From Heteronotia binoei (taxonomy: Eukaryota), in NCBI RefSeq assembly GCF_032191835.1, contig NC_083231.1, positions 4,154,001-4,218,000 of the forward strand: 64,000 bases of DNA. Direction: 5' to 3'. Within the stretch, counting starts at the first letter, position 1. Each line of letters starts with the position of its first letter. A program made the translations under genes and the position numbers. The notes under the pieces were generated by a model that saw nothing but the letters and a program-made list of their open reading frames with translations, made no database searches and had not been told where the DNA came from. Shown one piece after another: positions 9,197 to 38,514 of this stretch.

Positions 9197-9442
9197 CTGT
9201 CTCTCTCCAGAGAGAGCAACTGATTTATCCAGTCACTGCATAGCTATCCATTCACCAGGGCAGGTGGTTTGAAGAACACATCCCCCAAACCATACAAAGA
9301 TGCAGCAAGGAGGTATGCAGCCCACCACTCTCACATTTTATCCCTGCTCTGGCACATAACACAGTATTGCAATGGACTACTGCCCCAGCTGGATGATAGT
9401 TCCAACTCTTATTGGACATGCAGAAGATAAAGAGCTACCTAC

Positions 9443-9968
9443 TGTTTCCTTCCTGCTCTTGTCCCTCGAGAGATGGCGATTCTGAGGCCCAAACTGCCGG
9501 CCCTTTCGTTGCCCCAGAGCTTGGTCCAGCATCGTCTTCTTCCAGTGCTTTGTTAGAGGGACTGCTGTGCTGATCTTCAGATCTGAATGGCTGGTCCAGT
9601 TCTCGAGCTTCCACAGCGGGAGAGCTGCTCCCACTGCTGAGAGGAATCGATTTGTTTGGCTTGGAGCTGCCCCATTCTTTCCCTTGGGCTACCGCCAGAG
9701 CTTCCATGATGGTCAGGACATTCCGGCCAGCAGGGAGGGCTGCCGGCGGAGGGTCAGTTGTCTTGATCCCAGCAGGGAGTTGGAGGGTCCCAGGTGTCTT
9801 CCTCTTTGTGCTGCGCTCCCCTGCCCTTGCCTGTTGGTGGCGAAGGGGCCCATTGCCCTGCCCCCCGGAGCCCTCCTCTCCTGCCAGAGCGCCAGAGGAG
9901 GCATCCCCATGGGAGAGAGGCAGCTTCCGTCTCTGCAGGATCAGGGGCCTATAAGGGCTGCTCTTCAT
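9443..9968 (-). CDS. FOXM1: FOXM1 first coding exon, CDS part (exon incl. UTR 9443-10017)
   Basis: MKSSPYRPLILQRRKLPL.. and PAGIK..GKE.GSS.PNK match the FOXM1 N-terminus; acceptor TTTCCAG before 10017, 49 nt UTR; donor ACA|GTAGGT, phase 1, fits the next exon. Confidence 0.93.
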
Positions 9969-11602
9969 CCTCCTTGGCCAGCGTATCGGACCTCCATCGA
10001 AGACACAGGAACAGGCCCTGGAAACACCAAGAGAAGAGGTGACATTTCAGGACAACTCACCATTGCTTTGTTTCTCCTGATGGGGACCCAAAGCAGGTTT
10101 TTTAAAATCAAAAACTTTCCTCCTCCTCCTCCATTTTATCTTCCCAGCTGCCATCCTGTGAGGCAGGCGAGGCCGAGAGAGAGAGTGGCAGAGAGCCCAA
10201 GTGCCCCCAGTGACCTTGCATGGCAGAGGAGGGGAGGAATCTGTACCCGGGACTCCCAGATCTTTGTCAAGTGCTCATGAAATAAATTTCCCAGACTTTT
10301 ATGAAACAATCCCATTTATAGCAAAGGCTGTCAAAGACCTGCCATGCACTTTGGCACCTGCAGTAAGAATGCAACCAATGCACCACAAACCACCTAAATA
10401 GATATGTTTCAACAAGCAAACTATGTTGTTGGCTAGTAGCTTTTGCAAACTTCTTTGCATCCCGGCAGCATGAGGGCAGGCATGTGAATGCCCAGAAAAA
10501 CAAAAGGAAAAATGGGAAACTTGGAAGAATATTTTCTCTTCTAGAATGACTGAAATGCTTTCAAGGAGACATATATACCTCTTAAATACAGGATGCATTT
10601 CTGTACCTGGAGTCATCCTTTTGACCTAGTGGTTGACCCTTTTACCCCTCCTCAAACCACTGTTACTACAGACTGAGTAACAAGTAGCTTATTGCAGACT
10701 TTGTTGGACTGGGGAGAAAAACCCCAAAAGATCCAAAGGAGGTGGGCAGAAACAGTACCAAAACCTCCAAGGAAAACTTGGAAAGTTTCATTGAGAACTG
10801 AGCTCTAACCAGTAACCATAAAGGAAGAAGATGCCATTTACCCAGAGCTACATCTTATTATTGCACTTATTACTGAAAGCTAAGAATTTCAATGTATTGT
10901 TCTGGATCCTATTTGGGCACTGGAGTTTCCTGGGGTACCGACATCTGTCTGGCATGAGTCGTCGTTACTGTCTACTGTGCCATTTGTTGTTTTATTGTTT
11001 TTATTGCTTGGTGGGTTTTATGTTGTAAGTCGCCCAGAGCCCACTGGTGGGATAGGGTGGGGTATAAATTAAGTACGTAACAGTACTGGGAATTCAATAT
11101 GAAACTGTACTCACAGTTTAATTGCTGTAGTTTGATGTTTTGTTGCTTACCACAAAGTTTTTCTACTTTCCAAATAGCAAAAATTAAGGCCCAGGTGCCA
11201 CGGCAGCACAGCTTGCAGCTCTTTTTCAAGTACTGGGCATACTTCCAATTTTGCTTGTACAAAACGAAGGTGTTTCTAACTTTTACATCCTATAAGTATG
11301 TCAAATATTGCAATATTATATGCTAAGTAAAAATATATGCATTTTAAAATCAGTTTTCGCTTGATGGGTCAGTAAGTATGGAATAGATTTCCATATTTTG
11401 AAAAATTTATCCCCCCCCCCCCGCCCCCGGTGGCTTCAAAATTCCCAGCACTTTCCCATCTCTAGTGGAGGCAGCAGAAATTCTTTCTGCCTGAACCAGG
11501 TGAGGGTTTTTCTTCATCCCACAGCAGATCCCTCCCCTAGAAGGTTTGAGGAAAATGGATATAAATGCAACACTTAATTTACTGCTTTATTAAAATCCAT
11601 CA

Positions 11603-11865
11603 TAAGAACATATGAGAAGCCATGTTGGATCAGGCTAATGGCCCATCCATTCCAACACTCTGTGTCACATAAGAGAAGCTATGTTGGATCAGGCCAATGG
11701 CCCATCCAGTCCAACACTCTGTGTCACATAAGAACATAAGAGAAGCCATGTTGGATCAGGCCAATGGCCCATCCAGTCCAACACTCTGTGTCACATAAGG
11801 ACATAAGAGAATCCATGTTGGATCAGGCCAATGGCCCATCCAGTCCAACACTCTGTGTCACACAG
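11603..11865 (-). repeat. Short tandem array (4 units) of the same 67/59-bp CR1-tail unit
   Basis: Same unit as 2306-4932, here mostly with the GCCATG variant. Confidence 0.93.
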
Positions 11866-13221
11866 AGGCCAAAAACTGCCTTAATTTTCTTCAAGCCAAA
11901 GAAAACACAAGTGAAAATAAATTTCAAGCCAAAGAAAACTGCTGAACCCTTTGCTTGTTGAGCACCTGCAGTCGGGAGAAATCCATGTGGCATGAAAGCC
12001 TCACCATGCAGTTGGCACAGGCAGCCCACTGACCCCCCCACTGGCATCACTGGGATTGGCTTCGGCAAAAGGCCTCTCGGCCCCAGAGCATGGCACAAGT
12101 CCTGCTATGCAGCAGCATAGATATTGGGTGGAGGGGGCATGTCTTGCCAGTTAGGTAGCTCTCAAAGTGCTTTCAGGATGGGAGCCCCCCCAAACAGGCA
12201 AAAACAGCAGCATAGCCCATCAGCACCTATGATGGACTGAACAGCACAGCCCACCCCCACGAGACCCCAAGCAGCACATGATGCTGACCAAGTGTGTGCC
12301 CAATCAGCACCTTCCTCTGCGCTGACCACACCCCTAATCAGCCCCCCACCCCGTACAAATGGTTCCAGGAGGGCTCCTCACAACCCCTGAGGTAGAGCGC
12401 ACAGCTTGGGATTCTGTTCAGCAGCTCCTTGGTGGAGAGCACAACACAGACAGGGCGCTTAGCACTGCCGGGTGAACAACACCACAAAGAGAGCGAAGTC
12501 CACACTCTGGGTCTGACCTTTCCCAGATTTTGGCTCCAGCAGGTACACCAGCTTCTCTGCCAGCATCCTAAGGGACAACCACAGCCACAGCCAGGGAAGC
12601 AGGCCTCCCGTCCCCTCCCCACTCTCACCATGCCCAGCAACAGCCTGGCAGCCCCCGAGGCTCATGCCCCCGGCCGACAGTTGTGTGGGAGCACCTCGGG
12701 GAGTGCTGCTGCGGAGGGGGAGCCATGGTGTCCACCACGCACTGGGCCACTGCCAAGGACCGCTGCTGCGCTCCCCCCTGCTCTGAAGCCTCTGGTGGTC
12801 GGCAGGAGCCCCCAGCTCCAGTAGATGGCCACACCAATTCCCGTGCAGGAGCAGAGAGCCTCAAAGACGCTGATGGACTCACCCCAACGACACACAATGG
12901 TCTGGACGTGATGCTGACCCAGCGCAAGAAAGGGGTGGCCAAAATGCTAAGGATAGAAACTTCCCCCCCTTTCTGCAGTGATGAGTTGCAGGCAGCCACT
13001 CCCCCAGGTGTCCCTAGCCCCTCCATGGAGCGAAACCCCCAACAGAAGCCCTGACCCAGTCAAGTCCACCCCTCTGGGCAACCCTTGAGGAGGTGCCCCT
13101 AGCGATGGCAGACCTGATGGGGCTGAAGCCGAAAGTGCCAGGAACCCCTACAGCCACTCCGCTGGCATCGGCCACCTTCAAAGGGGGAAGAGGAGATCCC
13201 ATCTCCTCCCCCTCCTGGCAA

Positions 13222-13405
13222 CAGATGCCCTGTGAGGTCAGCGGGGCTGAGAGAGCTCAGACTGAGAACTGCTCTTGAGAAAGCAGCTCTGTGAGAACTG
13301 TGGTCACTCAGCTGGCTGGCTACATGTGGCGGAGGAGTGGGGAATCAAACCTGGTTCTCCCAGATGAGAGTCCATACACTTAACCACAACACCAAACTGG
13401 CTTCT
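13222..13405 (-). mobile_element. tRNA-derived squamate SINE, partial
   Basis: Reverse of CCAGTTTGGTGTAGTGGTTAAG..GGAGAA..GGTTTGATTCCCCACTCCTCC head. Confidence 0.75.
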
Positions 13406-14012
13406 AGAGTGCCAGTTCCTGGCGTTGGTGCCTGTTGTGGGCTCTGGGGAGAGGGTGTGTGGGAGCAACAAGGAAATTGAAAATGCACGGGAGAAGTCTT
13501 CCAACAATGCTGTCCACACAGAAGTGTGTGCGTGCGTGGGGAGGGGGAGTCAAGGGGCCCGGCAAGAGTGCCCCCAGACGCAGGCGTGCACCACACAGTG
13601 ATGGAGTTCTGGGTCAGCTGACTTTCCTTGGTAAAGGACCCGGCCAGTCTGGGCACCAGGGCCAAGGGAATGTGGCTCCAGGGGCCTTGTGCAGCCAGAG
13701 CCGACATACCGTTCTGAACAAGCGCTCCAAGCCAGCGTTGTCAGGGCCCGCCCACATCCAGAGGTGGCCAGCAGCCCTGAGTGCTGTCGACCAGGCGAGG
13801 ACCCTCCCAGAGGGCAATTCCCTACAGAGGCTCACAGGGATTTTGGTGAAGCAAATGAGAGGCCCAACAGTGGCCTCAGCCCAGCAACCGTGACAGTAGA
13901 TGCCATCACTACACATCCTCCCATGCCACGTTACAGCCACTGCTGACTGACTGTTCCTGGGCCCAGGAGCTGTGGTCCTGCCCCGTGGGAGGCTACTTTT
14001 ACAATCTCATTT

Positions 14013-14292
14013 ATTTGGTGTCGTGGTTACGGTAAGTGTGCGGATTCTTATCCGGGAGAATCAGGTTTGATTCCCCACTCCTCCACCACATGCAGCACCT
14101 GCTGATGTGACCTTGAGTCGGTCACAAGTTCTCACAGAGCTGTTCCACTCAAGAGCAGTTTCTATGAGAGCTCTCTCAGCTCCACCTACCTCACAAGGTG
14201 TTTGTAGGGAGGAGAAGGGAAAGAAGATTGTAAGCTGCTCAAACTCCTTCGAGTAGTGAAGGGTGGGGTATAAATCCAATCTCTTCTTCTTC
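14013..14292 (+). mobile_element. tRNA-derived squamate SINE, near full length
   Basis: A/B-box head (TTTGGTGTCGTGG..GGTTTGATTCCCC), body and TATAAATCCAAT(CTT)n tail. Confidence 0.8.
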
Positions 14293-14330
14293 ACTCAGGT
14301 TTCTCAGATCACAGCTTGAAAATGCTAGAA

Positions 14331-14963
14331 CAGGGGTGGCCAAACTTGGTTAACGTAAGAGCCACATAGAATAAATGTCAGATGTTTGAGAGCCACAAGA
14401 AATGAACATCAGATGTTTGAGAGCAGGCAAGCAATAGATGGGGGAGGCAAGGGTGGAAAGAAAGCAACTTTAAATGCGTTCTCCATGCTGCTGTAGGGTT
14501 GCCAGGTGTGTGTTGGAAAATACCTGGAGACTTTGGAGGAGGATCTGGGGAGGGGAGGGGGTTCAGTGAGTTACAATGTCATAAAGTCCACCTTTCAGAG
14601 CAGCCATTTTCTCCAGGGGTAAGTAATACAGACATAAAGAGGCGGCTACACAGAAAAGTATCAATAATATTGATAATAAATTGTTTGTTTCAAAATATAG
14701 AGTAACAAGCCAAGACTTGTATCAACAATTGTTACTTTTATACAGTTTTTTCCTTTTGTTACAATATCTTCTCCAGGAGAGCTGACCTCTGCCAGCTGGA
14801 GATCAGATGTAAAGGTGGAAGATCTCCAGGCCCCACCTGGAGGCTGGCAACCCTAAGCTGCTGGCTGGCTTGACTTGGAGAAGTGATTTAAAGAGACAAA
14901 TGCCTTCTCCAAGCCAGCTGATGGGGTGGTGGGGCTTCAGGAGCCACAGTTTGGCCACCCCTG
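14331..14963. mobile_element. hAT MITE with perfect 8-bp TSD TGCTAGAA, containing nested insertions
   Basis: CAGGGGTGGCCAAACT TIRs; TGCTAGAA at 14323-14330 and 14964-14971. Confidence 0.9.
14494..14855. mobile_element. Nested hAT-type MITE (TIR TAGGGTTGCCA)
   Basis: TAGGGTTGCCAG / CTGGCAACCCTA termini; flanks TGCTGCTG / AGCTGCTG (7 of 8 match). Confidence 0.85.
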
Positions 14964-16639
14964 TGCTAGAAGAATTTGGGGGTGGGGGGGAGATAAGCAT
15001 TGGAAACAATACATGTAGGAGAGAAGAAAGCCCTTTCTGAATGCAGTTAGGACATCAGGGGGGAAAATTACCCTCAAGATATCCTTCAAAAAGGGTTCCG
15101 TGGTCATTTGATTTCCTGGTTGTTTGAAGGAAGACAGAAGTAACTGATCAAGTTTGAGCTGAATCCACAGGGAACTCCTTCATCTGGAAATCCGTCCCCA
15201 AGGCTCACAAACAGCCACAGTAGCGGGCATTCGTCAAGGGAACCAGGCCAGAGATTGACAGAATGTGACCACAGATTCTTTTTTTCATTAGATAGAGCAT
15301 CAAAAATTTAAAGACGAAATGCTGAGCTCATCAGGATCTAATACAACTGATGCGTCCAGTCATTGTCTCTGTAGCCGTTATGAATGCCAGCCAGTAGGCA
15401 CCCCCAACATTCCATGGAGGTTATAGTTCCTCTCCCTCCAGCATCCCATGGAACAACCTTCGAAACACTGCTAGCTCTCTTCCCCTGACATTTCAGTTAC
15501 GATGATCCCCTCAACTGCAGAAATGTCCTGGCTAGTAGCCACAGACTATACAAACACTGCTTACAGTTGACAGCATGGCATTTGGTTTCTAACGATGAAG
15601 CAAGACTATGTTACAGCAATGACCAAATGGAATTTATCACACAAATGTCTGGACCTTCATTGGTTGTAAAAGTTGAGCACCTGAAGGTCTACGATAAAGC
15701 AGTCCAGAAGGCAATTCTCCAACAGAAGTGAAAACAGATAGGAGGCCCCATTCATGATCGTGAGGTTTGCACATGGTAAGTTTCCACTGGATTGTTTCCT
15801 TTGGTTTCAGGTTTTGCAGAATTAACGGGGGAAAGAACACCAAAACCCTATACCTGGAACAGGGTGTTTCTGAATTACGGCAAGAGCAAAAATGCACAAC
15901 AGTATCTCAAACAATTTCTTGGTAATCTAAGGTTGCACCTGTGCGTTTGGACCGAAAAACGGTGAGCAGACCAGTGGAAATCTGTGCGCATCTGCTCATG
16001 TGCTCCCACTAAAGGGAACCTCATCCTGGATGTCTCTGTCACCTGAAATGTGAAGCTGCCCTCAGCGCCCCTGAAATCCGCACTCAGGTTTCTGGAAATA
16101 CTGAAACCATTGAAAAAACTTTTGATCTGACCAAAACCAAACAAAAAACAATGGAAATTTGGGGGGGAAACTGAAATATACACAATACTTACTGTCCAAT
16201 CAAACCAAAATTTTACTACTTTAACGACCAAAAATGCATAATTTATAGTTTACTAGGTGTAAAAAATTGCAATATTTGAGATATTTAGGGAATTTGTAAG
16301 TTATAAATGCCATATTTCCTTCAAGCAAAATTGCAAATATAAAGAATACTTGTGAGAAAACTGCCCCGTTTAGCACATGTACCTTGGTTAGAAAGAGCTC
16401 AGTTCTCAATGAAACTGCAGTTTTCCTTTGAAGCTTTGGTGGTTTCTGCCCCATGTCTTTCTGAGCTTTTTTTCGTCCAGCAAGGCAGGGCAATAAAGCT
16501 ACTTTCTACCCAGCCTGTGATGAATCCATGTGGCTTGGGGAGAAGTGAAACGTTCAAAAACAGGAAGACTCTCATCAAAAGAACTAAGTTAAGAATGAAA
16601 GCCCTGCATGCTCCCCTTATGAAGATCAAGAGTCCAGCA

Positions 16640-17310
16640 CAAGAGTGGCCAAACTTCCTTAACGTAAGAGGCACATAGAATAAACATCAGATGTTTGAGA
16701 GCTGCAAGACACAACCGCCAGATGTTTGAGAACCATATGGATGGATGGAGCAGGCAAATGGATGGGGGGAGGGAGAAGATGATATTGGATTTATACCCTG
16801 CCCTACGCTCTGAATCTCAGAGTAGCTCACAATCTCCTTTACCTTCCTCCTCCACAACAGACACCCAGTGAGGTGGGTGAGGCTGAGAGAGCTCTCACAG
16901 AAGCTGCCCTTTTCAAGGACAACCTCTGTCAGAGCTATGGCTGACCCAAGGCCATTCCGGCAGCTGCAAGTGGAGAAGTGGGGAATCAAACCCAGTTCTC
17001 CCAGATAAGAGTCCGCGCACTTAACCACTACCCCAAACTGGCTCTCTGGAGGTCATGTGGCCAGGAAAGACTGGCATACTAGCTGGAGGGTCACAGCTCT
17101 GTGAGAACTATGGCTGACCCAAGGCCATTCCACGGTTCTCCCAGATACGAGTCCACACACTTAACCACTACAAACTGGGAGAAGTGGAAAGAAAGCTGGC
17201 TTGGAGAAGTGATTTAAAGTGACAAGTGCCTCCTCCAAGCCAGCCAATGGGGTGGTGGGGGCTTCAAAAGCCACAATGTGTGAGAAACAGCCACAGTTTG
17301 GCCACCCCTG
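16640..17310. mobile_element. hAT MITE interrupted by SINE insertion(s)
   Basis: Decayed left TIR CAAGAGTGGCCAAACT, right TIR AGTTTGGCCACCCCTG; flanks GTCCAGCA / GTCCAGTA. Confidence 0.8.
16773..17046 (-). mobile_element. tRNA-derived squamate SINE, full length (partial duplicate at ~17090-17175)
   Basis: Reverse complement of the element at 14013-14292. Confidence 0.85.
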
Positions 17311-17329
17311 GTCCAGTAGATCCTTAAAG

Positions 17330-17545
17330 ACTAACAACATTTGTAGAACAAAGTTAGAGTCCGGCAGCACCTTTAAGACCTTTTGTGAATGGCTTATACC
17401 CTGAATTAAACTTTGTTGGCCTTAAAGGTGCCTCTGGATTCAAACTTTGTTCCTCTACTTCAGACCAACATGGATACCCGCCGGAATCTAACAAAATTTG
17501 TGGTACGATATAAGCTTTCATGAGTCATTGTTCACTTCTTACTCT
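17330..17545. mobile_element. Penelope-like short element fragments with decayed hammerhead
   Basis: GAGTCC..GCACCTTTAAGACC motif in both orientations; minus strand AAGAAGTGAAC..CTCATGAAAGCTTA. Confidence 0.55.
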
Positions 17546-18119
17546 TTTCTACTGCTGCAGAGAGACCAACATGATACCCATCTCAATCTACCTTCCTGGT
17601 GCAGAAAAACATCCTGGATTTAAGAACTGTATATGTCTACAGCATATTCACCTTGCCTTTGAAAGCATTTCACTCATTCTAAAAGACAAAATATTTCACA
17701 GGGTTTTTTTAAAGTGCTCCCCGAATTTCCAGTTTATCTTGCATACCAGTAGCACGTACCCAAATGGCAGTCACTACAGAACACGAGGAATAGTGTGAGC
17801 TATGCAGTCCCTGGATGAACCCCCACCTTCGCTCTGAGCCCACTTTCTGCAGTAGAGAAACACGACCACGTTACAGGGCTGTTGTAGACCACGTGAATAA
17901 CTGCAATGATTCATGCAGCACAAGAGTATTTATTCCAAAAATGTTGTATCCTTTTGCTTAAAGTAAGCACAACTGGGAAGCCAAAAGGAAAAGTGAAATA
18001 TTATAAGGGACCCTTTTTTGCAAGTTGTTCTGCTGCAAAGACTGTTTTCACAGCAAAGAACTCATGCACTACTGAGAAAGCCTCACCTCTTTAGGAGCTT
18101 GCTTTATTTTTATTTTATT

Positions 18120-18670
18120 AATTATATTTTTAGCCTGCCTCTCCCGCAGCAATCGGGGCAGTTAACATAAATGCAAAACATAAATATTATATAAAACAAT
18201 TTAGCACACTGGCCCTCTGGCAAGAAGATCTGAGAAACTGACAGTAGGTCAGATAACGGAATGCCTGGAAGAATAACTGTCTGACAGGCCATGTGCAACC
18301 TTGACAGGTCAGACAGAGCATTCCACATGGTTGGAGCAACAGCTGAGAAAGCCCTTGCTCTGGTCAAGGTTACATGAGCTACCCAAGGACCAGGCACTGC
18401 CAGAAGCCCACGTGAAGAATGCAAGCAGGGGGGTGGGGGGCATGATAAGAGAGGCAGCCCTTAAGGTACCACTTAGAGCTTAGAGATTAAAACCAACGGG
18501 AAGCCAGTGCAGCTGCTTCAAAACAGGCAGAATATGTGCAGATCACGAAGCATTGGTCAGCAGCCTGGCAACCACATTCTGAATAGCATCTTCAGGGGCA
18601 GCCCTGCACAGCAAACAGTCCAATCGGGAGGTGACTGCCACAGAAATCACTGTGGCCAGGTGTGACCAGG
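18120..18670 (-). mobile_element. L2-type LINE 3' fragment
   Basis: Minus-strand translation ..TRARAFSAVAPTMWNAL.. and an L2-like 3' end with AT-rich tail. Confidence 0.65.
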
Positions 18671-19399
18671 ATAAATGTGTGTGGGGGGGGGGGGGAAGAG
18701 GAGACAACTGATGAGCCAGGTGGAGATAGAAAAATGCCAGTTTCACCACATTTTTGTCTGCCAGGGTGAAGTGTCCAGCAGAAGGGCAGGATGGGCAAGG
18801 GCTGTCCAGGGCTTTCACCCAGAGCGACCTGCAGTGGAATCCCCCTGGCCTCCCCAGGAACACCATGCAAGGAGGGAGAAGACTCCTTCCCCTTTCGGAA
18901 GCCCATTTTCTGAGCAGGCTGTTTTTCCGCTGGTGCTCACCAGGCAGGAGTGCCAGCCAGGAAGAGGCACAGCGTTCCCGCCCGCTTCTTTCTTTGGGGC
19001 TCCGATCCCTGAGCAGCAGCAGCAGCAGCGCGGCCCCGATCCCTTCGCTCTGCCTGGAGTGATGGTGGTGCTGGAGCGGTGCGCATAGGGGACTGGCTGT
19101 CTGCAGCACCCAAAAAGCCCAGGCCCGTGCTGGGGGGAGGGGGGCGTCGGAGCCTCCACGCTCCACCGAGAGCGGGGCTCAGTCCCGGCTGCAGACCTGT
19201 GCGGGGCGGAGGAGGAGGCTTCCGGCCGGGAGAGGCGACCTGGTCCGGGGGGGCTCTTCCGGGCTGGGCGCCCCAAGGCGCGTGCACCGCAGTAAGGGGT
19301 CTGCTGTCTGCACTCGCGGGACCGCGCGAGGCTCGGGGGGGTGGGGGGTGGGAAGCGTGCCGCCGCTCGAGAGAACCGGGCTGGTTTGGGCTGACTTAC

Positions 19400-19600
19400 C
19401 GGGACCCCTAGCAGAGAAAGCCTGCGCATCCTCATCCGCCTCCTCCCGAGACGCCAGCCCTCGAGCGCCCCCCACGGCCGCCTCCTGCTGCACCTCCGGG
19501 GGGGGGGAGAGCCGAGCCGCGCCCCTCCCCAGCGGGAGGGAGGCTGGCAGGTAGAGACCCGCCGCCGCCCAGCTGCTGCTGCTTCTTCCGCCTCCTTCCC
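19400..19600 (-). other. FOXM1: Putative non-coding exon 1 of FOXM1 (5' end approximate)
   Basis: Consensus donor CG|GTAAGT at 19400/19399 on the minus strand, directly downstream of the E2F/CHR module; FOXM1 has a non-coding first exon. Confidence 0.6.
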
Positions 19601-19605
19601 CGGAT

Positions 19606-19661
19606 TTTGAATTTGGCGCCCAACAGGCTGGTTGCTGTCACGTGGGCCCGCCGGGGCCAAT
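19606..19661 (-). promoter_or_regulatory. Cell-cycle promoter module: CHR TTTGAA (19606-11), E2F-type TTTGGCGCC (19612-20), E-box CACGTG (19639-44), CCAAT (19657-61)
   Basis: Motifs read directly; the clustering is typical of DREAM/MuvB-regulated genes. Confidence 0.75.
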
Positions 19662-20145
19662 GGGCGCCAGGCGTAGGAGTCCAACGTTCCGTGCCCGGGC
19701 CGCGCCTGCGCCCTGCTCCCACGGGGGTGGGCGGGGCCTGACTGTGGGCTCTGCGAGGGGGCGGCGCTCATGGCGGGGGTTGGGGGGGTGAAGGACAGCC
19801 TGGGAGGCGGCCACGCCCGGCGGCCTGAAACGGGCCTGGGAGGGAGGAGCGGCCAGGAGGCGGTGGTCAGGGCGGCGGCAACCCTGCCTGGCGGAGCGCC
19901 TCAGGCCGCGCGGCCCTGCTCGACCCCGCTGAGGAAAGCGCGCCGCTTTCGCGGAGGCCTAGCGCGCATGAGGCGGGGCCACGGCGTCATGCCCACCCAC
20001 TTGCTCGAGGCTGGGCGGGGCCGGCCTCGCCTGGCCCATTCAGGCAGCCGACGGGAAGGAGGGGCGTGAGCCTGGTCCAATGGCAGGAAAGGTGGGCGGG
20101 GCCAGGCTCGTTGGGCCGCGGCAGGCCGCCCTCCCCCCCCCCGCG

Positions 20146-20159
20146 GTTCCCCTAGCAAC
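20146..20159 (+). promoter_or_regulatory. RFX X-box
   Basis: GTTCCC-CT-AGCAAC, 14-bp X-box geometry, ending 6 nt before the ATG of the ciliary gene TULP3. Confidence 0.7.
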
Positions 20160-20165
20160 GGCGGG

Positions 20166-20206
20166 ATGGCGAACGCCAGCAGCGGGCTGACTTTTCCTCG
20201 CGTCGG
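20166..20206 (+). CDS. TULP3: TULP3 coding exon 1 (41 nt, MANASSGLTFPRVG)
   Basis: ATG in GGGATGG context; GG|GTAAGG donor; phase 2 matches exon 2; same length as human exon-1 CDS as recalled. Peptide itself is poorly conserved. Confidence 0.75.
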
Positions 20207-20514
20207 GTAAGGCCGCGGGCGCTTTGTGTATGCGCAGAGGCCCTGCCGCCGAGGGGTGGTGGGCGGGGCGCTCTGCCTTCGGGGCACCCGGCTGGGCCGG
20301 GCCTGGTCTGGCTGGAGAGGGCCAGCGGGAAGGGAGGAGGGGAAGCGCGGGGCGCCCCCGGCCCTTGGAGGGTGATGCGAGCCCCAGCGGCAGCGGAGGA
20401 GCTGCAACATCTCAGCAGCGGGTCTCCTCCTCCCCGCTCCTGGCTTCACCTCACCCACCCCTGGGCTAAGGGGCGGTTCCCAGAACTCCTGCACATTGTC
20501 ACCCAGGAGGAAGT

Positions 20515-21095
20515 CATCAAAGTCAGTCTTGTCTTCTCAGACTGGCAGCGGCTCTCCAGGGTCTCAAGCTGAGGTTTTTCACGCCTATTTGCCTGGACCC
20601 TTTTTTGGAGATGCCAGGGATTGAACCTGGGACCTTCTGCTTCCCAAGCAGATGCTCTACCACTGAGCCACAGCCCCATTCACGGCTCTCCAGGGTCTCA
20701 AGCTGAGGTTTTTCACGCCTACTTGCCTGGACCCTTTTGAGTTGGAGATGCCGGGGATTGAACCTGGGACCTTCTGCTTCCCAAGCAGATGCTCTACCAC
20801 TGAGCCACAGCCCCATTCACGGCTCTCCAGGGTCTCAAGCTGAGGTTTTTCACGCCTACTTGCCTGGACCCTTTTGAGTTGGAGATGCCGGGGATTGAAC
20901 CTGGGACCTTCTGCTTCCCAAGCAGATGCTCTACCACTGAGCCACAGCCCCATTCACGGCTCTCCAGGGTCTCAAGCTGAGGTTTTTCACGCCTACTTGC
21001 CTGGACCCTTTTGAGTTGGAGATGCCGGGGATTGAACCTGGGACCTTCTGCTTCCCAAGCAGATGCTCTACCACTGAGCCACTGTCCCTCCCTCC
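20515..21095 (-). repeat. Head-to-tail array of 4 Squam3-type tRNA-SINE 5' halves (137-bp period)
   Basis: Unit starts at 20549, 20683, 20820, 20957; each has A box TGGCTCAGTGG and B box GGTTCAATCCC; matches the monomer at 37299-37515. Confidence 0.92.
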
Positions 21096-21899
21096 CCCCT
21101 AGGTCAACCCTGCCCAGTGCAGCGTGTCTGTTCTCTCTGTGCCAAACATCGCAGCCCCACACAGCTGTGGACTTTCATCTTCTCTCTGGGAGATGCATTC
21201 CATTTCTCTTGCTGTCTTCTGTGGACCTGAACTCCCAAGATGCAAGGAATATTGCCTACCCCAAATCGCTTTCCCCGCTACTCCCTTTTATCTTCCTCTT
21301 GGTTAGCTTGTGTGATCCCCGTGTGCTTTGTAGGTATGATTTGCTGTTTTCTTCTTTTATAATAAAACACTTTTCCGGTTGCTCCTCAGCCTGGTTTATT
21401 TTGATAGTTCTCTAGGGGTACAATCCCTGTAATCACCGGTGGAGATCTCCTAGTTAACCGTTCTTGCATGACTCCAATTACACTAATTCCCCCTATTAAT
21501 TTGGAGACTTCCAATTTGGGTGACAGTAATGTAGTATAAAACTTGTCCTTGCCCAAGCATCAAGAAACACACTGTTCGCCTGATACGGAACAATTTCCAT
21601 AGACTGGTGGTGGTGGATGTTGTGGTCAAACAACCCCTTTATGGCAGTAGAGATGGCTCAGCGGGGTCTTGAGCAATGAATAGTTGGAAATCCCCACACC
21701 TCAATCTGTCTGTTTTTAGTAGCTTGAACAGGCACCCTCTCCCCTTGCTTTCCCCCTCCAACTGATTCTCCGCTCTTCTCAACATTTTGTGTCTCCCTGA
21801 GGATGGTCAGTCGTCATGGGGTCACCTTTGTTTTTGTTTTTTAATGTTAGTTCACAAACCCATATTCCTGTATGTGCCGAATATTGCCTTTGCAGTTGC

Positions 21900-22137
21900 T
21901 GTTTTCAGGAGGGAGACTAGATTATCTGGCCCATTACCACTTAGGCCTTGCTAGCAAAAAAGGGAGCAATTCCTGACTGAATGAACTGGATTCAAAATAA
22001 ACTGTTAAAAGCTGTTAATAAAGCTGTTCTCAGGAGGGAGACTTGATTATCTGGCCCGTTACCACTTAGACCTCACTAGCAAAAAAGGGAGCAATTCCAG
22101 ACTGAATGGACTGGATTCAAAATAAACATGTTTAAAA
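21900..22137. repeat. Two-copy tandem duplication, 125-bp period
   Basis: TGTT(T/C)TCAGGAGGGAGACT..GGATTCAAAATAAAC at 21900 and 22025. Confidence 0.85.
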
Positions 22138-22479
22138 TCCTTATTTACAGGAATATGAGCTTATGTGGAAAGAACAGAAAGACTGCAGCCAAATTCTCCC
22201 TCTTCTCCTCCAGCCTCCATGCTTTCTTTCTACTCCTTGCTTTTCAGACCACTGTTTCATAGTTACACTTTTGCCTCAGGAAGCTTAGTTCTTCAGTGGC
22301 TCCTCATGACAACTTCTCATAGCCTTGATTCTCTGTCTGGTATATTGGGAGCTTTTATTAATACATTCCGTGTTCTAGTAATTATAATACCTTGAAATTG
22401 GTTTTTTTGGTGTATTTTTTGGTATTTGTGTGTATGTGTGCGTGTGAAGGCATGTTGACTTCTGGTGACTGACCCCTAT

Positions 22480-22640
22480 AGGGGGCCTGAAGGATATTCA
22501 GAGAGGCAGCTGAATAAAGCCTGCCCCTGTCCTCCTGACCTGGTATTCCAAGGAGGTCTCCCCTCCCAGTACTAACCAGATTCTTAACTTCCAAGATCTG
22601 ATGAGACTGGTCTTGCAGCTGGGCTGTCCAGGTCAGGGCT
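22480..22640 (-). mobile_element. 5S rRNA-derived SINE, decayed
   Basis: Reverse of GCCCTGACCTGGACAGCCCAG..CTCATCAGATCTTGGAAGTTAAG..TGGTTAGTACTGGGAGGGGAGACC. Confidence 0.7.
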
Positions 22641-24759
22641 TAGCTTGAAATTGCTGTTTTCTAATGAGATGAGCTGGTTGCAAACTCTTTCTACATTTGC
22701 ACATGTTTGTGAATATTTGTGATATTTAAAAATATTGGATGATTCATTGATTTATTTTTCTTTTCTTTTTCCAAATCCTACCAACCTATGGTTAAAGAGA
22801 TAGGAAGTAATAAAAGTAAGTAAGGAACAGAAATAAGATAATTGAAATGCCACTGTATTCTTCACAAGAAGACAACTGTCAAAGCCAGAAGTGACCGTTG
22901 AAGTTGCTGTGTGTCAAGAGTGTACCCCACCCCGTATCCTCTTGTCATATAATAACTTAGTATTGTCTTGGGAATGATCCTGAGTATCTGTTTAGTTGAG
23001 TGAGACGGTCTGTGTCCTATTCTGAAATGATTAACTGTTGTTTTGCTTTATGTTACTTTTGCTTTTGCTAGATGGCGCATCCCCAACCCTTATCTCTGCT
23101 GCTTGTTAGCATGGTAACGAAGGTCGTGCTGGAGGAGAATAAAGGAATTAATAGCTTTACACCTGGATTGTAGTAGAAGGGGGGACAGGAGATGTAGAAT
23201 GCCCGCCAAATGTACCCGCCGCTTTTTGCCATGCTTTGCTTGAAATGATAACGGCCCACCGAGGTTATATAGGAGATGCCTTTGGGCTGGCACCCCAGTT
23301 TCAGCAACTTCTTGTATTGCCTTGAGATGCTTGGAATAAATGTCTGAATTTACCGACTGCATGTTCCTTGGGGGCGAGGCTTTGCCTTCTTTGAAGGTGG
23401 CGTGGTTTTCTGCTTTCAAGATTGGAATGGGAGGAGACTTTATTTGATAGTGATGTAATTACTTGGCCCTCTGGGGATTTGTGTATTATTTCTTGAAGCC
23501 ATCTCAACCATGTTCTAGAAAATTCTTTATGTCCAGTGAAGTTTTGAGTTTTAGATATACTTTTATGTCTTCATATTGGTGTAGTCAACCAGAGAAGCAC
23601 AAAAATTTGAGCCTCCTGTACTTTAAATATTTCTGTCTGTGCTAGCAGTTGGTTTTGCGATTGTGTCCTTGGCTGTGCCTCTGTGGATTCTCTGGGTAGC
23701 TCTAGTTGCTGTCACGAGTGCAGAGGCATTCACGTTGGCAGTGGAGCATGCAGAAAAGGTTCCTCTCAGGGTTGCCTTGCCTCAGCTGTCCATGGCTGCC
23801 ACCAGAGATTGGTTTACATCTTTTATTTTAAAAGAGAAGCCTTTTTGGTCTGGAGGAAATGGAAAATATGTCACTATGTCATTGAGTGGGTCAATGTATG
23901 TTCCAGTCAGGAGAAAGAGTTTGGGTTTCTAGATACTCTTAATGATTGTGCTGACTGATACGTACTGATGTTGTTCCACTGGCCCTGATAAGGGGATTTT
24001 ACTCTTAGGGCCTAAACTGGAAGGTGCATCTTTGCAGTATTATTATTTGCTGTATATGTAATTGCTGCTGACATAAGGCCGACACATTTGTGACCTTCCA
24101 GAAATTGTGTCATTCGTTTCCATACTGGAAAATGACATGTTGGGCCTTAGAGTAATTGTTGATTTATAGGTGTAACTGGGACTCTGTTGTATTTTGACCT
24201 CTGAAGAAGGCCTCTTCAGGCCAAAGCGCACCAGAGATCCAATACCACAAAGTCTTGGTCAGACCTATAAGAACTCCTGCTATCCTCCTCTCTTTGGAAT
24301 CCTGATCCTTCTCGGTGGGGTTGCTGGCCTGAAGCAATTTCATTCCTCCTCTCTTCTGGGCCACATGCTGCTCCTGCTGACAGGGGAAGGGGTGAGCCAA
24401 AGAGGATTACAGCAACCGCTTTGGCCCAAGCCAACATGGAATGGTCCAATATGGAAATGAATGGCACAGTTTTTGGAAGTCCACAAATGCATCTGGGGTT
24501 CTTAGTTCCCACTGACTCAGGGAGAACAGGTGGCTGCCTGCTGGGGGGAGCAGCTATAGCTGTGCCCTCACCATCCAGCACAGGCACATGCCAGGGCATA
24601 AGGGCCCTCCTTTCCCTCATTAGCAATTAGGGGATTTTGTTTAATTAGCCCTGTTCTGTTTAAATTAATTTAGTTTAGTTAGTGCCCCAATGCCCCCTCC
24701 TCAGAAAAATCCTGGCTATGGGCCTGAGTGGGATTGAGGTGATGAGAGAGGAGGTCCTG

Positions 24760-25550
24760 AGACTGATCCCCAGGCCCAGAGGTATATGGACATCCAGGAG
24801 TTCTGAAAGAACTCAAATGTGAACTTGTGGATCTCCTGACAAAAACATGCCATCTGTCACTAAAATCTGCCTGCATTTGTAAAGACTGGAAAGTAGCTAA
24901 TGCAACCCTCATCTTTAAAAAAAAAAATTTCCAGAAGAGATTACAGGCCGGTCAGTTTAACACTACTGGGTAAGTTGATGGAATCTGTTATTAAAGTTAG
25001 AATTAGTAGGCACATTGATGAACAAAAGCTATTGTGGAAGAATTAGCATGGATTTTGTAAGGAAAGATCTCACCTTACTAACCCGTGAGAGTTCTTTGAT
25101 GGTGTGGCCCAATAGATGCTTTTGACCTCGACTTCCAGAAAGCTTTTGCTAAAGTTCCTCATCAAAGGCTCCTAAGTAAACTCAGCGGTTATGGGATCAG
25201 GGGACAAGCCCTCTTGTGGATTAAAAATGGGTTAATGAACAGGAAGTGGTGACTCTGTGTGGGTAGTTTCCACAGGGGATGGTGGTGAGCAGTGGGGACC
25301 GCAGGGCTTGGTGCTGGGTCTGTTGCTTTTTTAACTTGTTCATTAATGATTTAGAGCTGGGAGAAAGCAGTGAAGTGGCCAAGCTTGCGGATGACCCTAA
25401 GTTGCTCAGGGTGGTGAGAAGCAGGGAGGATTGTGAGGTGCTCCAAAGGGACCTGTCGAGGCTGGGCGAGTGGGCGTGACAGAGTGTTGGACTAGAAGGA
25501 CCTCTGGCCTAATGCAACATGGCTGATCTAATGTTCTTATGTATTTTGAC
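24760..25550 (+). mobile_element. CR1 LINE RT fragments with internal deletions and 3' tail
   Basis: HPGVLKELK.., DFQKAF.KVPHQRL, LFINDLELG..AKLADD motifs; ends in one copy of the tail GACAGAGTGTTGGACT..ATGTTCTTATG. Confidence 0.85.
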
Positions 25551-25763
25551 TGTGCTCTTTCCGGAGAACTTTTATCAAACCAGGTTTGGGACAGATCATA
25601 GCACAGTTCCAGAAATAGTATGAATGATGACATGTGAATGCTCCCCAAAACAGCCACGGCAGATTAAAACATTGATAGAATCAGTTTCTGAGATATGCTC
25701 TACTATATGATGCAGGTTAGCTTTACTAGAAATGCTAATACCTGCATTTCTCTTCTTTCCCAG

Positions 25764-25815
25764 TGGCTTTGATGATGAAACTTTGAAACTGCGGCAACTG
25801 AAATTGGAGAACCAG
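25764..25815 (+). CDS. TULP3: TULP3 coding exon 2 (52 nt)
   Basis: GFDDETLKLRQLKLENQ (IFT-A-binding helix start); TTTCCCAG acceptor, CAG|GTAAGC donor. Confidence 0.93.
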
Positions 25816-26229
25816 GTAAGCTGTGGGATAGATTTTGGCATGTTTTAAAGCAGGAACAAATAAATTTTACTGGTCTTGGGTCTTGCTAGTAAGGAGTTTT
25901 AGCGGCTAGTGACAGGCACAGAGGGGAAAAGGGGAAGGCGCACATACTCAGGCATAACTAAGGAGAATTTTGACCCATTTTAGCACTCTGGCGGTTCTTG
26001 CAGTGGAGAGCTCCTGCCTTGTCTTCTTGCCTGGACCCAGAGAGAATCCTGGCAGGTTGCCAAACAGGCACCTGCACTTGAGCAGGAGGGAGGGCAAGCT
26101 GGGGCTGACTGGCAGCAACAGAAAATGTCTGTTCTGATAAGTGATCATTGTGTGACCATCCCCCTCTAGAGCTTCTCCTTTGGATGATTTAGAAGAACCC
26201 CCCCCCGCCTGCCCTCCATAAGCATGCTG

Positions 26230-27515: not shown

Positions 27516-27684
27516 AGAACCCTTCTGGAGAAAAAGCAGCGGAAGAAGCGTCTGGAACCCCGGATGGTGCAGCCCAATCTTGAAGCCAAGCAGCAGCAGC
27601 ACAGGGCGAAGCCTCGAGGGCCTGAAGAGCAGACCCCCTTAGTGGGGGCCCCGGCCCCTGCCCTCGCCAATGTGGTCCTGCATG
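27516..27684 (+). CDS. TULP3: TULP3 coding exon 3 (169 nt)
   Basis: [48 protein letters not shown]; GGCAG acceptor, G|GTAGGC donor. Confidence 0.95.
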
Positions 27685-28604
27685 GTAGGCACAGAGCTTT
27701 AGTCCCTTCTCCAAATGGTGTGGTGGTGATCTGGATCTTAAAACCTGGGAACTGGGGCAGTGCCCTTTTGATGCTGGCATAGCTAGCTGGCATCCTGTGC
27801 TCTCAGTGAGGGGAGAGACACACATTCAGATCCAAGGCACTGGGAGCAGAGCAATTGCATTGCAGAGCATAGGCTGCCCACCCCCTCTGGTGTCCCTCCT
27901 CTGTCACTTAGATACACAGAAGCAGCCGTCCAAGAGGTGCTGATGCCAGCAGCTCCCAGCAGAGCGAGGGGAGGAGCACAAGGAGCAGAAGAGGGCCATC
28001 GTGCAGTCCCCTCCTGCTCTCGGGGGCTTGAATCGCAGGCAGACCCACAGGTGCACCAGCAGGTTCACAGCCGTATGATGGATGTGCTTCCACAGTTCAC
28101 CTGGCAGGGGAAGCCCCGGCAGGAAAGCTACAGCCCGTCCCTTGCAAGGGGCAGGGGATACACGTGGGCATACATGTAGCAAAGGAATGCATGGCAGAAC
28201 ATTCTCTGAAGGCTTCGTTATCATCCTAGCTGCTCATTGGGGAAAAGCCCCTGGGTAAAAATGGGAAGGAGGGGCGGGGGCTGAATGACCATTGAGGGAA
28301 AAGATGGGGATGAGGCAAAGCTCAGCAGCCATGAGGGGGGAGGAGGAGGCGGAGCCCCGTCCAGCCCACTGCAGCGCACTCCTTTGCCTGCATACGCAGT
28401 TGAGCGCGCCTGGAGTATAGGAAGCCTCAAGGGCACAGGAGGGCAGAGGTCTGGAAGGAGGGCCAGGCATAGCAGGGGACTTGCAGCAACAGGCCCAGTT
28501 GCTGGGTGGATGGATTGACTCCAGCTGTGAGAGTAAATGACCGGTCTGTCACCCAGCAAGTTTTATGGCAGAGTGGGGGTTTGAACCCAGGTGCAGTGGT
28601 GGGA

Positions 28605-28810
28605 AGTGCCATCAAGTCACAGCTGACTTATGGCAGCCCCCGTAGGGTTTTCAAGACGAGATGTTCAGAGGTGGTTTGGCATTGCCTGTCTCCGCATCAC
28701 AGCCTTGGTCTTCCTTGGAGGTCGTCCATCCAAATACTAGCCAGGGCTGATCCTGCTTGGCTTCTGAGGTCTGATGAGACTGGGCTAGCCTGGGCTGTCC
28801 AGGTCAGAGC
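28605..28810 (-). mobile_element. 5S rRNA-derived SINE
   Basis: Minus strand GCTCTGACCTGGACAGCCCAGGCTAGCCCAGTCTCATCAGACCTCAGAAGCCAAGCAGG..TAGTATTTGGATGGACGACC. Confidence 0.75.
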
Positions 28811-29149
28811 CTCCCCAGTCATACTTGTGGGCTATTCTTGGTGCTGTACTGCTCTGGTTCGTCAAGTGTCCTTGGCCAAAGAAGTCCAGGCATGCTTCTT
28901 TTGGGACTTCTAGATCCCCAAGAGTTGAGAAGATGCCTTGTGTGGTCATGGCTCTGGCATGTAGAGCATCTTCCCCTTTTGCTGCTGCTGTTGTTGTTCA
29001 GGGGCTTTGGTGGAGCTGCCGTATCTGGTTTTGAAGGGAATGATGGCATACGTGGAGGTGATTTCCTGGTTGGTCACCAAGATGGTGGTGTGCAGGAGGC
29101 TCTGCTGACCAGGGCCGTGTGTTGATTGATTAGTGGATTTACAATTCAT

Positions 29150-29420
29150 GACCAGTTGATTAATGTGTTCCTAATCCATGACTTGTTAAGTCCAGGTTGT
29201 GCTTGGTTGGCTGCTTAAGTGCGGTGAGGCTGCCTGTGCTCTGTGTGTCTGAGGCAGGTATAGCTTTTTTGCCTCTATAGAAAGCTCTCCTGAAGGCCAT
29301 TTTAAACAGCTGGCAGAATGACAGGCGCAGAGGAGCTCTCTGGACCTTCTTAGGCAGGCTGTTCCACAAGGTGTTGCCACCACAAAGAAAGCCCAGGTGT
29401 GGGTGATTCCTGATCTTGCC
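29150..29420 (-). mobile_element. L2-type LINE 3' fragment
   Basis: ..LWNSLPKKV..F..K.AF type remnant, similar to 18120-18670. Confidence 0.5.
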
Positions 29421-29939
29421 TGCTTGCAGGGTGGCTCCTACAGAAGGCTCTAAAAGTTGAGCGGAGCGGTCTAGTTATTTGATTCTCCTAAGACCTGTAG
29501 TGTTTTTCTTCTTTCATACAAATGGTTCTACTCTTGAGACAGTAGGGAGAAGTTTGCGTCTCTTTCATCTCAGGACGTTCATTACTTTTAAGAAATAATG
29601 CTTTGTGCAGAGCAATGCATCATCGTGGGGAACAAGGACTGCAGATCTTCCCCACTTTCTTCTCCATCAGAATCCATTTCTGACTCAGGAAAAGATCATG
29701 TGGAATAATAGCTACAGGCCACTTGGCTTTGGGGACGGGATGGCTTCCTTCTGCCGGATCTCTGCAGTCCCAGGAATCAGCCTTCCCGGGGTTGAGGGGG
29801 GGGCAAGGGGGAAGATCGACACCCATCAGCATCTTCTGCGGAAAGATCACTGGATCCAGCAACTGCACTGCCCTGTCATTTTCTCTGGTGTGTTTCAGAT
29901 TTCCAGTAGTAACCGATTGCATTGAGTAGCAAATTAGCT

Positions 29940-30560
29940 TTAGGAAAGTGCAAACACCAAAGCCATTAATAGACAATACAATAAAGCGTTAAAACAAATG
30001 CAGGTAATACAACTAAAAGAAAAGCTGCAAGGAACTTTAACAGATTGGATTCTTCTTCCTCAGTTACACGGTTTAATTGTAAATCCTATAGTAACATTTA
30101 GTTGGAATAGATACCAATACGTCCGATGGTCTGAAAACAATATGGGGAAATGATAGTGGAACGAAAATAGAAGAAAAGGTATGCAACAAGTTATGGATGG
30201 CTCAAACAAGGAAAACTATATTGATAGTTCTTAGGGTAGAGCGCTCTGATACATCAATGGTATATTACCCCAGAAGGCCTTATAAGAATTAGTGAACACA
30301 AGTAAATAAAAAAGGTTGGAGAAACTGTAATCAGCAACGTGATTATATTCACATGTGGTCATGTCCTGTTGTATCACAGTTTTGGGAGAAAATGTTTTCA
30401 GAAACGGAAAGTAGCACTCATCAAATTATTTATGCCCTGCCAGCAGTGGCTCTGTTAACGGTCTGGGGGGAACAAAATGGAAAAGTGGCGCCTAAAGGGT
30501 TAATAGTGTTTATATAGTTTAAAACTAATATATATATATAAACGAACAGCATATATAGGT
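29940..30560 (+). mobile_element. L1/Tx1-like ORF2 C-terminal remnant
   Basis: AT-rich decayed coding sequence with WRNC..DYIHMW.CPV.SQFW zinc-knuckle-like motif. Confidence 0.45.
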
Positions 30561-30695
30561 TTCCTATTTTTTTTTCTGGAATAATCTCTGTGGAACGAAA
30601 CAATTCTTCCATAACTCCCTGTAGATTACTAGGAGGCATTCAGGCAGTCTCTGTACATCAGCTGCTTCAGTAAGCTGTCCCCCTGTCTCGTACAG

Positions 30696-30872
30696 GCATT
30701 GACGGCCCAGCTGTCTTTCTGAGCTCAGAGCTACAAGGCTTGGAGGCCGAACGGCAGATAATTTCAGTTGGATCATTGACAACAGAAGATGACACCAAGC
30801 CAGAAAACACAGAGGAAACCTCAGGAGATTCAACTTCCAAGATGGATCTGCAAGACATTCTACAGAAACGAG
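30696..30872 (+). CDS. TULP3: TULP3 coding exon 4 (177 nt)
   Basis: GIDGPAVFLSSE..MDLQDILQKR; TACAG acceptor, G|GTGAGA donor, phase 1 to phase 1. Confidence 0.92.
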
Positions 30873-31834: not shown

Positions 31835-32100
31835 TTTTGAGTCCAGTCAGGCACCTTTAAGACCAACAAAGTTTTATTTGCTCGTGTGTGTGTGTGTGTG
31901 CACACTTCCTCAGATCCAGGGAAACAAGACGTCCTCAGCCATTACATAGAGGGGTGTATGTGGGGTGGGGTGGGGGCTTAGTTGCCAGGAGGGACCTTGA
32001 ATAAAACTTGGGTGGTTTTAAAGGTACCACAGGACACAAAGTTTGTCCAGCTGCTTCAGACCAACACGGCTAGCCACCTGAATCTATAATAATTCATAGT
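31835..32100. mobile_element. Penelope-like short element fragments; hammerhead stem II replaced by (CA)n
   Basis: TTTGAGTCCAGTCAGGCACCTTTAAGACCAACAAAG; minus strand CTGAGGAAGTGTG(CA)n. Confidence 0.55.
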
Positions 32101-38290: not shown

Positions 38291-38514
38291 TAAAAAGCAT
38301 TCTTGGAGTTCAGTCAGGTCGGGCAGCCTGACTCAACTGTGTCTGGTCACACCAGCCTGGCCCATTTAAATGCCTTTGGAACTCACTTCCAGTCACACTT
38401 GGCATTTAAATGCCTTTGGAGGTCATTTCTGGTGGGGCTGCCAGACCTGGAAGTAAGCTCTGAAGGTATTCAAAGACCTTCGGAGCCTGCACAAACTTCA
38501 CAGAGTTAGCAGTG

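Follow-up and report, generated by a model that had tools for sequence, protein, structure and literature searches.

The window analyzed here, a 64 kb stretch of DNA from the gecko Heteronotia binoei (Gekkonidae), contains the FOXM1 and TULP3 genes in divergent orientation, with no RHNO1 gene between them. RHNO1 (RHINO) is a vertebrate-specific adaptor that tethers the 9-1-1 clamp to TOPBP1/ATR; once phosphorylated by PLK1, it brings DNA polymerase theta (Pol-theta) to mitotic breaks (PMC8104967, PMC12426944). Mammals keep RHNO1 between FOXM1 and TULP3 (PMC8104967). The best explanation for the gecko locus, with a probability of about 0.85, is that RHNO1 was removed from its ancestral site in gekkonids, leaving FOXM1 and TULP3 as divergent neighbours. 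This absence is apparently a lineage-specific and previously unreported event; no report of RHNO1 loss in geckos or lizards was found in a full-text literature search. In kind, the event is an ordinary one, that is, lineage-specific gene loss together with promoter juxtaposition. An earlier note on this DNA, made from the sequence, had claimed that RHNO1 is missing and that FOXM1 and TULP3 stand directly head-to-head. Both claims were borne out, the first by Pfam, profile, tblastn, and motif searches with positive controls and the second by the conservation of the promoter blocks and of the TULP3 ATG exon.

Sites in the window are given in its own coordinates, and sites in other species are given in the coordinates of their own loci. 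These loci are from Paroedura picta (L001), Phrynocephalus forsythii (L002), the ptarmigan Lagopus muta (L003), Heteronotia binoei itself (L004), Zootoca vivipara (L005, GCA_963506605.1), the turtle Lepidochelys kempii (L006), Gekko japonicus (L007, GCA_001447785.1), Anolis sagrei (L008), and Elgaria (L009). L004 is the NCBI FOXM1 locus of Heteronotia binoei (GCA_032191835.1, CM063333.1). It spans all of FOXM1 and 10 kb past it, and positions 1-19968 of the window are 100% identical to it. The window itself begins inside FOXM1 and contains the entire TULP3 gene.

RHNO1 searches and the FOXM1-TULP3 interval

The Pfam scan covered 412 stop-to-stop open reading frames (ORFs) on both strands of the window, with a minimal length of 40 aa in 19013-27940 and of 70 aa elsewhere. 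Matches to Forkhead, Tub_N, Tub, and transposon domains were returned. No match to the RHINO family (PF15319, cut-off of 25 bits) was found among these ORFs even at E-values up to 1. Additionally, two hidden Markov models (HMMs) of RHNO1, one based on 40 bird proteins and the other with lizard and turtle exons added, were run on all six-frame pieces of at least 12 aa, and neither of them gave anything below E = 7 in the window. When non-avian RHNO1 was sought by profile, 234 matches resulted, and the best 120 of them all belonged to birds. Searching the window by tblastn with the lizard and turtle RHNO1 exons yielded noise only. The pair found at 16837-17054 against exon A of Zootoca (E 0.25) was rejected; its parts lie in different frames, and the sequence is a multi-copy repeat.

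Three RHNO1 motifs, MPPKK(K/R), KF[SP]PLxFE, and DTPExEYG[IV]KVTWR, were absent from all six frames of the window and of the gecko loci. The N-terminal MPPKK(K/R) and the C-terminal DTPExEYG[IV]KVTWR were both found in the loci of Lagopus and Zootoca, and the N-terminal motif was also found in that of Lepidochelys. KF[SP]PLxFE, the sauropsid form of the RAD9-binding motif, was found only in Lagopus and Zootoca. The general form of this motif in RHNO1 is KFxxLxF (human 88-TSKFPHLTFESP-99), and this looser pattern also had no match in the window. The RAD1-binding motif of RHNO1 is WVxPxF (PMC10937111). It had no six-frame match in the window, but an intron splits this motif after the W in the bird and lizard genes and makes it invisible to a genomic pattern search; the pattern was therefore dropped as evidence. 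Further N-terminal patterns for RHNO1 gave noise only and were set aside as well.

These negative results are meaningful because the controls detect squamate RHNO1 exon by exon. Scanned singly against Pfam, the two ptarmigan exons score 2.4e-24 and 1.5e-52, the two Zootoca exons 2.8e-28 and 1.9e-12 (100 and 48 bits), and exon A of the turtle 6.9e-21, with single exons of the three species ranging from 48 to 180 bits. The bird HMM gives 1.6e-31 and 6.5e-11 for the Zootoca exons, and all of the ptarmigan exons, both Zootoca exons, and turtle exon A were recovered by the HMMs. The interval between FOXM1 and TULP3, all TULP3 introns, those FOXM1 introns that the window contains, and the 5 kb beyond TULP3 yielded no RHNO1-like sequence. 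The profile searches thus agree with the earlier reading, which had seen no RHNO1-like exons between the genes, in TULP3 intron 1 (20207-25763), or in the FOXM1 introns; nor were RHNO1 exons found anywhere else in the window. FOXM1 intron 1 is GC-rich at 12-14 kb, and this part was considered as an alternative promoter or as hidden RHNO1 sequence and rejected; it is not a CpG island and has no RHINO match.

FOXM1 exons are found on the minus strand below 19605 and TULP3 exons on the plus strand from 20166, and transcription of the two genes is therefore divergent. The distance from the E2F site of FOXM1 to the TULP3 ATG is 547 bp, so the earlier estimate of about 550 bp from the E2F and cell cycle genes homology region (CHR) module holds, together with its coordinates. 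The conserved core promoter blocks of the two genes lie about 420-470 bp apart. Both blocks are located in a single CpG island (Table 1), and no second island was found among the 500-bp windows across the 64 kb. The GC-rich spacer between the blocks occupies the position of RHNO1 in other sauropsids. With its length of about 370 bp, it is unable to hold the main coding exon of RHNO1, because this exon is about 690 bp in bird and lizard. With promoters about 0.4-0.5 kb apart, the two genes would count as a bidirectional pair, for which start sites within about 1 kb of each other are usually required. A possible consequence would be that TULP3 is coupled to FOXM1 in its regulation.

The FOXM1 promoter block includes, in the order of the FOXM1 strand, ATTGG (CCAAT box), CACGTG (E-box), and GGGCGCCAAATTCAAA (E2F-like and CHR-like). 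In window coordinates, the CHR-like TTTGAA is located at 19606-19611 and is directly followed by an exact E2F site, TTTGGCGC, at 19612-19619; the E-box is located at 19639 and the CCAAT box at 19657. This block was aligned by blastn to Paroedura picta (window 19605-19682), Zootoca vivipara (window 19562-19665), and Lepidochelys kempii (window 19606-19703). In an alignment of seven sauropsids, GGGCGCCAAATTCAAA is invariant save for two positions, and CACGTG and ATTGG are near-invariant. These motifs and their conservation identify the CCAAT/E-box/E2F-CHR block as the core promoter of FOXM1.

The TULP3 block (20070-20221) is 78% identical to that of Paroedura over 162 bp (E 8e-29). A CCAATGGC box is located about 90-100 nt upstream of the TULP3 ATG in Heteronotia, Paroedura, and Lagopus. 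In Paroedura, the NCBI range of TULP3 opens exactly at the homologous ATG, L001 1570 (MADARGLTCPRLGAG, 44 nt, phase 2), and in Lagopus muta it opens at an exon with 41 nt and phase 2, as in Heteronotia. FOXM1 exon 2 has 63% identity to Paroedura FOXM1, and the NCBI range of Heteronotia FOXM1 begins at L004 10001, equal to window position 9968, in agreement with the assigned start codon. The assignments of exon 1 in both genes, on which the earlier inference depended, stand because they are backed by conservation and by the NCBI models; for FOXM1 exon 1 the 3' end is predicted, as are the exact start sites of both genes. TULP3 retains a conserved promoter of its own, with the CCAAT box, and its exon 1; both now lie directly beside the FOXM1 promoter. 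Thus, the proposal that TULP3 took over the partner position is right in that TULP3 now stands opposite FOXM1, and it fails in that the promoter of RHNO1 was not adopted.

The locus in other sauropsids

In Lagopus muta, the gene order is FOXM1 (plus strand), RHNO1 (265 aa, PF15319, minus strand), and TULP3 (minus strand). RHNO1 lies between the CHR module and the TULP3 ATG, which are 4.8 kb apart, and this ATG is located about 550 bp past the RHNO1 stop codon. The same order is known for the duck, with FOXM1 at 80,496,286-80,506,091, RHNO1 at 80,506,163-80,511,361, and TULP3 starting at 80,510,706 (PMC13718420), and for the turkey (PMC12819031). In Lepidochelys kempii, a RHINO gene is located upstream of FOXM1 and head-to-head with it, exon A being 5.6 kb from the CHR. 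In the lacertid Zootoca vivipara, the distance from the CHR module is 0.6 kb for RHNO1 exon A and 1.9-2.6 kb for exon B. The sauropsid RHNO1 genes have two coding exons, of about 58 aa and about 205-220 aa. Three of the squamate loci were uninformative on the interval beyond the FOXM1 promoter: L004 and the Anolis sagrei locus end about 350-400 bp past the CHR, and in the Elgaria locus, where the gene model spans 94 kb, a promoter block could not be recognised.

RHNO1 is absent from the FOXM1-TULP3 site in three gekkonid geckos: Heteronotia, Paroedura, and Gekko japonicus. The searches in these geckos covered about 91 kb in Heteronotia (the window and L004), 85 kb in Paroedura, and 65 kb in Gekko. 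The comparison of gene order in geckos, other squamates, and birds, proposed as a check in the earlier note, thus returned RHNO1 in birds and Zootoca and none at this site in the three geckos. In Paroedura picta, no gene is called and no HMM match was found between the TULP3 ATG (L001 1570) and the E2F/CHR module (5053), a distance of 3.5 kb, and no match was found across the 85 kb. The CpG-rich halves of the Paroedura interval are split by about 2.6 kb of CpG-poor DNA, and multi-copy repeat accounts for at least 1.4 kb of the 3.5-kb stretch. With the two promoters of Paroedura 3.5 kb apart, the tight head-to-head arrangement is not common to all geckos; the tight juxtaposition may be older and later split by insertions in Paroedura. 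In Gekko japonicus, TULP3 lies next to FOXM1, and no RHNO1 match was found. The assembly has a gap at the promoter: L007 5038-5678 is a run of N in place of the promoter region, without an assembled CpG island.

Some gene models at these loci are unusual. Both RHNO1 coding exons of Zootoca (L005 1583-2272 and 3374-3601, minus strand) are open and score well above the Pfam cut-off, yet the sequence collection used has no gene recorded there. In Lepidochelys, a 443-aa gene without a Pfam family (L006 7034-9971) extends across the FOXM1/RHNO1 promoter and FOXM1 intron 1 and is probably a spurious model. The TULP3 model of Gekko japonicus has 669 aa and is about 200 aa longer than those of other species. 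The FOXM1 range of Paroedura starts at an ATG in a repeat-like stretch, L001 10001-10045 (MLEKWANETWMQFNM, followed by a GT donor), 5 kb downstream of the E2F/CHR module. This segment appears to be an alternative first exon that derives from a transposon and belongs to one model.

Origin of the gekkonid arrangement

The ancestral state of sauropsids and mammals would have had RHNO1 between FOXM1 and TULP3, head-to-head with FOXM1, and the TULP3 promoter a few hundred bases past the 3' end of RHNO1. In the ancestry of gekkonid geckos, the interval would have lost the complete RHNO1 transcription unit, amounting to about 4-5 kb by comparison with the ptarmigan locus. The FOXM1 core promoter and, about 370 bp from it, the TULP3 CCAAT promoter and ATG exon would then have remained within one CpG island of 1.5 kb. 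The simplest reading is a single removal, which would have taken place after Gekkota diverged from the lineage of Zootoca and before the split of Heteronotia, Paroedura, and Gekko; deletion is the probable mechanism. The presence of RHNO1 in birds, turtle, and Zootoca and its absence from the interval in the three gekkonids support the earlier suggestion that the gene was lost or moved in this lineage.

Of these two outcomes, outright loss is somewhat favoured, at a little better than even odds. Its plausibility comes from Rhno1-/- mice, which are viable, show no obvious developmental defects, and have a mild phenotype (PMC12847792). Relocation, by translocation, by segmental duplication with loss of the original, or as a retrocopy, is rather unlikely; it would have altered the neighbourhood of the gene and left the gene content as it was. 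It has no direct support and would place RHNO1 beyond the extents searched in the three geckos. No relic or copy was found in FOXM1, in its 10-kb downstream flank, in any TULP3 intron, or in the 5 kb past TULP3. The position of RHNO1 is constant in birds, turtle, lizard, and mammals, and therefore the gene does not seem prone to moving; the viable mouse knockouts (PMC12847792) indicate that its outright loss can be tolerated.

The possibility that RHNO1 is still present at the gecko locus and too diverged for profile searches is very improbable. In its favour, RHNO1 is largely disordered and fast-evolving (mouse and human are 68.8% identical), and the Zootoca exons score far below those of birds. 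However, each Zootoca coding exon was detected alone, well above the Pfam cut-off, and the C-terminal motif shared by ptarmigan and lizard is in no gecko locus. Furthermore, the spacer is too small for the main exon, and no ORF in TULP3 intron 1 has even a weak RHINO score. Slightly less probable still is an assembly artefact in which the RHNO1 segment was dropped or collapsed in a GC-rich region. CpG islands are hard to assemble, and the older Gekko japonicus scaffold has its run of N where the promoter should be, but there is no N in the window or in the Paroedura locus, the flanking blocks are contiguous and conserved, and RHNO1 is missing from the locus in each of two independent chromosome-level gecko assemblies.

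Several observations weigh against removal of RHNO1 in the gekkonid lineage as set out above. The start sites and the junctions between exons 1 and 2 of both genes are read from sequence, conservation, and the NCBI models of relatives. The geckos sampled are all Gekkonidae, the Gekko japonicus locus being gapped at the promoter, and only one non-gecko squamate, Zootoca, is positive for RHNO1. In the agamid Phrynocephalus forsythii, no RHNO1 exon was found in the visible 2.7 kb upstream of the CHR (L002 1-2686). This may reflect a second or wider loss or merely a more spread-out locus (the Zootoca exons fit within 2.7 kb, and turtle exon A lies farther away). Finally, a true deletion would look the same as very old decay with sequence turnover.

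A further-reaching reading of the removal of RHNO1 is tentative, at slightly less than even odds: the gene would be gone genome-wide in gekkonids, possibly in all Gekkota, making these animals natural knockouts, and the fusion of the FOXM1 and TULP3 promoters in Heteronotia would form a new bidirectional pair that could give TULP3 an E2F/CHR-dependent, proliferation-linked expression.

Features of the window

The features assigned to FOXM1, TULP3, and the region between them are listed in Table 1. Exon-like TULP3 ORFs downstream of exon 3 were found at 38815-39162, 39365-39667, 42405-42629, 50455-50646, 57841-58125, and about 58.9-59.1 kb.

Table 1. Features of the FOXM1-TULP3 locus in the Heteronotia binoei window
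Feature	Position	Strand	Evidence and remarks
FOXM1 open frame with first forkhead-domain exon	848..1342	-	Single Pfam Forkhead match (1.1e-15) among 86 ORFs of 1-19400; forkhead sequence in translation
FOXM1 exon inside open frame	5891-6172	-	After ATG exon, before forkhead exon
FOXM1 exon 2 with start codon 9968-9966	9438..10017	-	Acceptor 10018-10020; 63% identity to Paroedura FOXM1; the end at 9438 is that of the open frame
FOXM1 intron 1, 9.4 kb	10018..19399	-	No RHNO1 exon, no second CpG island
CpG island, the sole one in the window, with FOXM1 and TULP3 promoters	19001..20500		GC 0.72-0.75, CpG observed/expected 0.67-0.76 in three successive 500-bp windows
FOXM1 putative non-coding exon 1	19400..19605	-	Just downstream of core promoter; predicted 3' end at consensus donor GTAAGT, 19399-19394
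FOXM1 core promoter	19606..19661	-	Motif positions; blastn to Paroedura, Zootoca, Lepidochelys; seven-sauropsid alignment
GC-rich spacer between the two conserved blocks, about 370 bp	19704..20069		Aligns to no other locus examined; no RHNO1 HMM, Pfam, or motif match
TULP3 proximal promoter and short 5' leader	20070..20165	+	CCAAT box 20077-20081, GC boxes; 78% identity to Paroedura L001 1669-1512
TULP3 exon 1, coding part, MANASSGLTFPRVG, 41 nt, phase 2	20166..20206	+	ATG 20166 in Kozak context; donor GTAAGG
TULP3 intron 1	20207..25763	+	No RHNO1 exon; holds tandem array and reverse-transcriptase fragment
TULP3 exon 2, GFDDETLKLRQLKLENQ	25764..25816	+	Acceptor and donor read from sequence; in frame with exon 1
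TULP3 exon 3 (Tub_N)	27516..27684	+	Pfam Tub_N match (2.8e-16) among plus-strand ORFs; splice sites read; in frame
Remaining TULP3, Tub-domain exons to about 59.1 kb	27685..59100	+	Pfam Tub and Tub_N matches

Repetitive and transposon-related elements were found in the introns of both genes. Near the start of TULP3 intron 1, where the CpG island ends, a 137-bp unit is tandemly repeated in 3.9 copies with 98% matches (20549-21082). The unit resembles a fragment of a tRNA-derived short interspersed nuclear element, and a related copy is located at about 37335-37541. At 32545-33475 (plus strand), a TULP3 intron contains a repetitive open frame of 237 aa, probably a minisatellite, in which a unit of about 40 aa (…GTGWPLCETGGWTRWTL…) recurs. 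A long interspersed nuclear element with large open frames, located at 46675-50360 (plus strand) in a TULP3 intron, looks young. One of its ORFs has a GDSL/SGNH esterase-like domain (Lipase_GDSL_2, 5.4e-06); after it come ORFs for endonuclease and reverse transcriptase, 348 and 253 aa long. In FOXM1, an intron contains a fragment of a DDE_3 (Tc1/mariner-type) transposase at 7052-7519 on the minus strand (3.3e-08).

Significance and comparison with known systems

The gecko locus is relevant to 9-1-1/ATR signalling, to mitotic Pol-theta end joining (PMC12426944), and to the evolution of bidirectional promoters. If the absence is true for the whole genome, a clade without RHNO1 would be a natural experiment on mitotic end joining and on the replication-stress response without this adaptor, and it would accord with the mild phenotype of Rhno1-/- mice (PMC12847792). 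The weight of the finding hinges on genome-wide loss versus relocation. At the level of the locus, deletion of one partner would have rewired a deeply conserved bidirectional promoter: the core of FOXM1 stays intact, and the functionally unrelated TULP3 becomes its divergent neighbour. TULP3 is a ciliary trafficking gene, and the FOXM1 promoter is cell-cycle-regulated.

The closest known system is the human FOXM1/RHNO1 bidirectional promoter (F/R-BDP; Barger et al., 2021, PMC8104967). Like it, the Heteronotia locus has a divergent FOXM1 gene, a CpG island, E2F sites, and a partner located a few hundred bases away. The two differ in the partner, which here is TULP3 with its own CCAAT-box promoter and not the start of RHNO1. 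The FOXM1 core promoter block is likewise shared with the sauropsids that have the FOXM1-RHNO1-TULP3 order, namely Lagopus, duck, turkey, Lepidochelys, and Zootoca. TULP3 of Lagopus resembles that of Heteronotia in orientation, in the CCAAT box, and in the 41-nt phase-2 first coding exon. In contrast, the 4.8 kb between the CHR and the TULP3 ATG contain RHNO1 in Lagopus, whereas the corresponding 0.55 kb in Heteronotia contain nothing recognisable.

The locus of Paroedura picta is similar to that of Heteronotia in the lack of RHNO1 between the genes and in the homologous TULP3 ATG exon and FOXM1 E2F/CHR module. It differs in that its CpG-rich blocks are separated by 3.5 kb with a CpG-poor and partly repetitive spacer, and it therefore does not form a tight bidirectional promoter. 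As in the Rhno1 knockout mouse (PMC12847792), the native locus of the geckos is without RHNO1; this state was engineered in a mammal in the one case, and in the other it is natural and lineage-wide at the locus.

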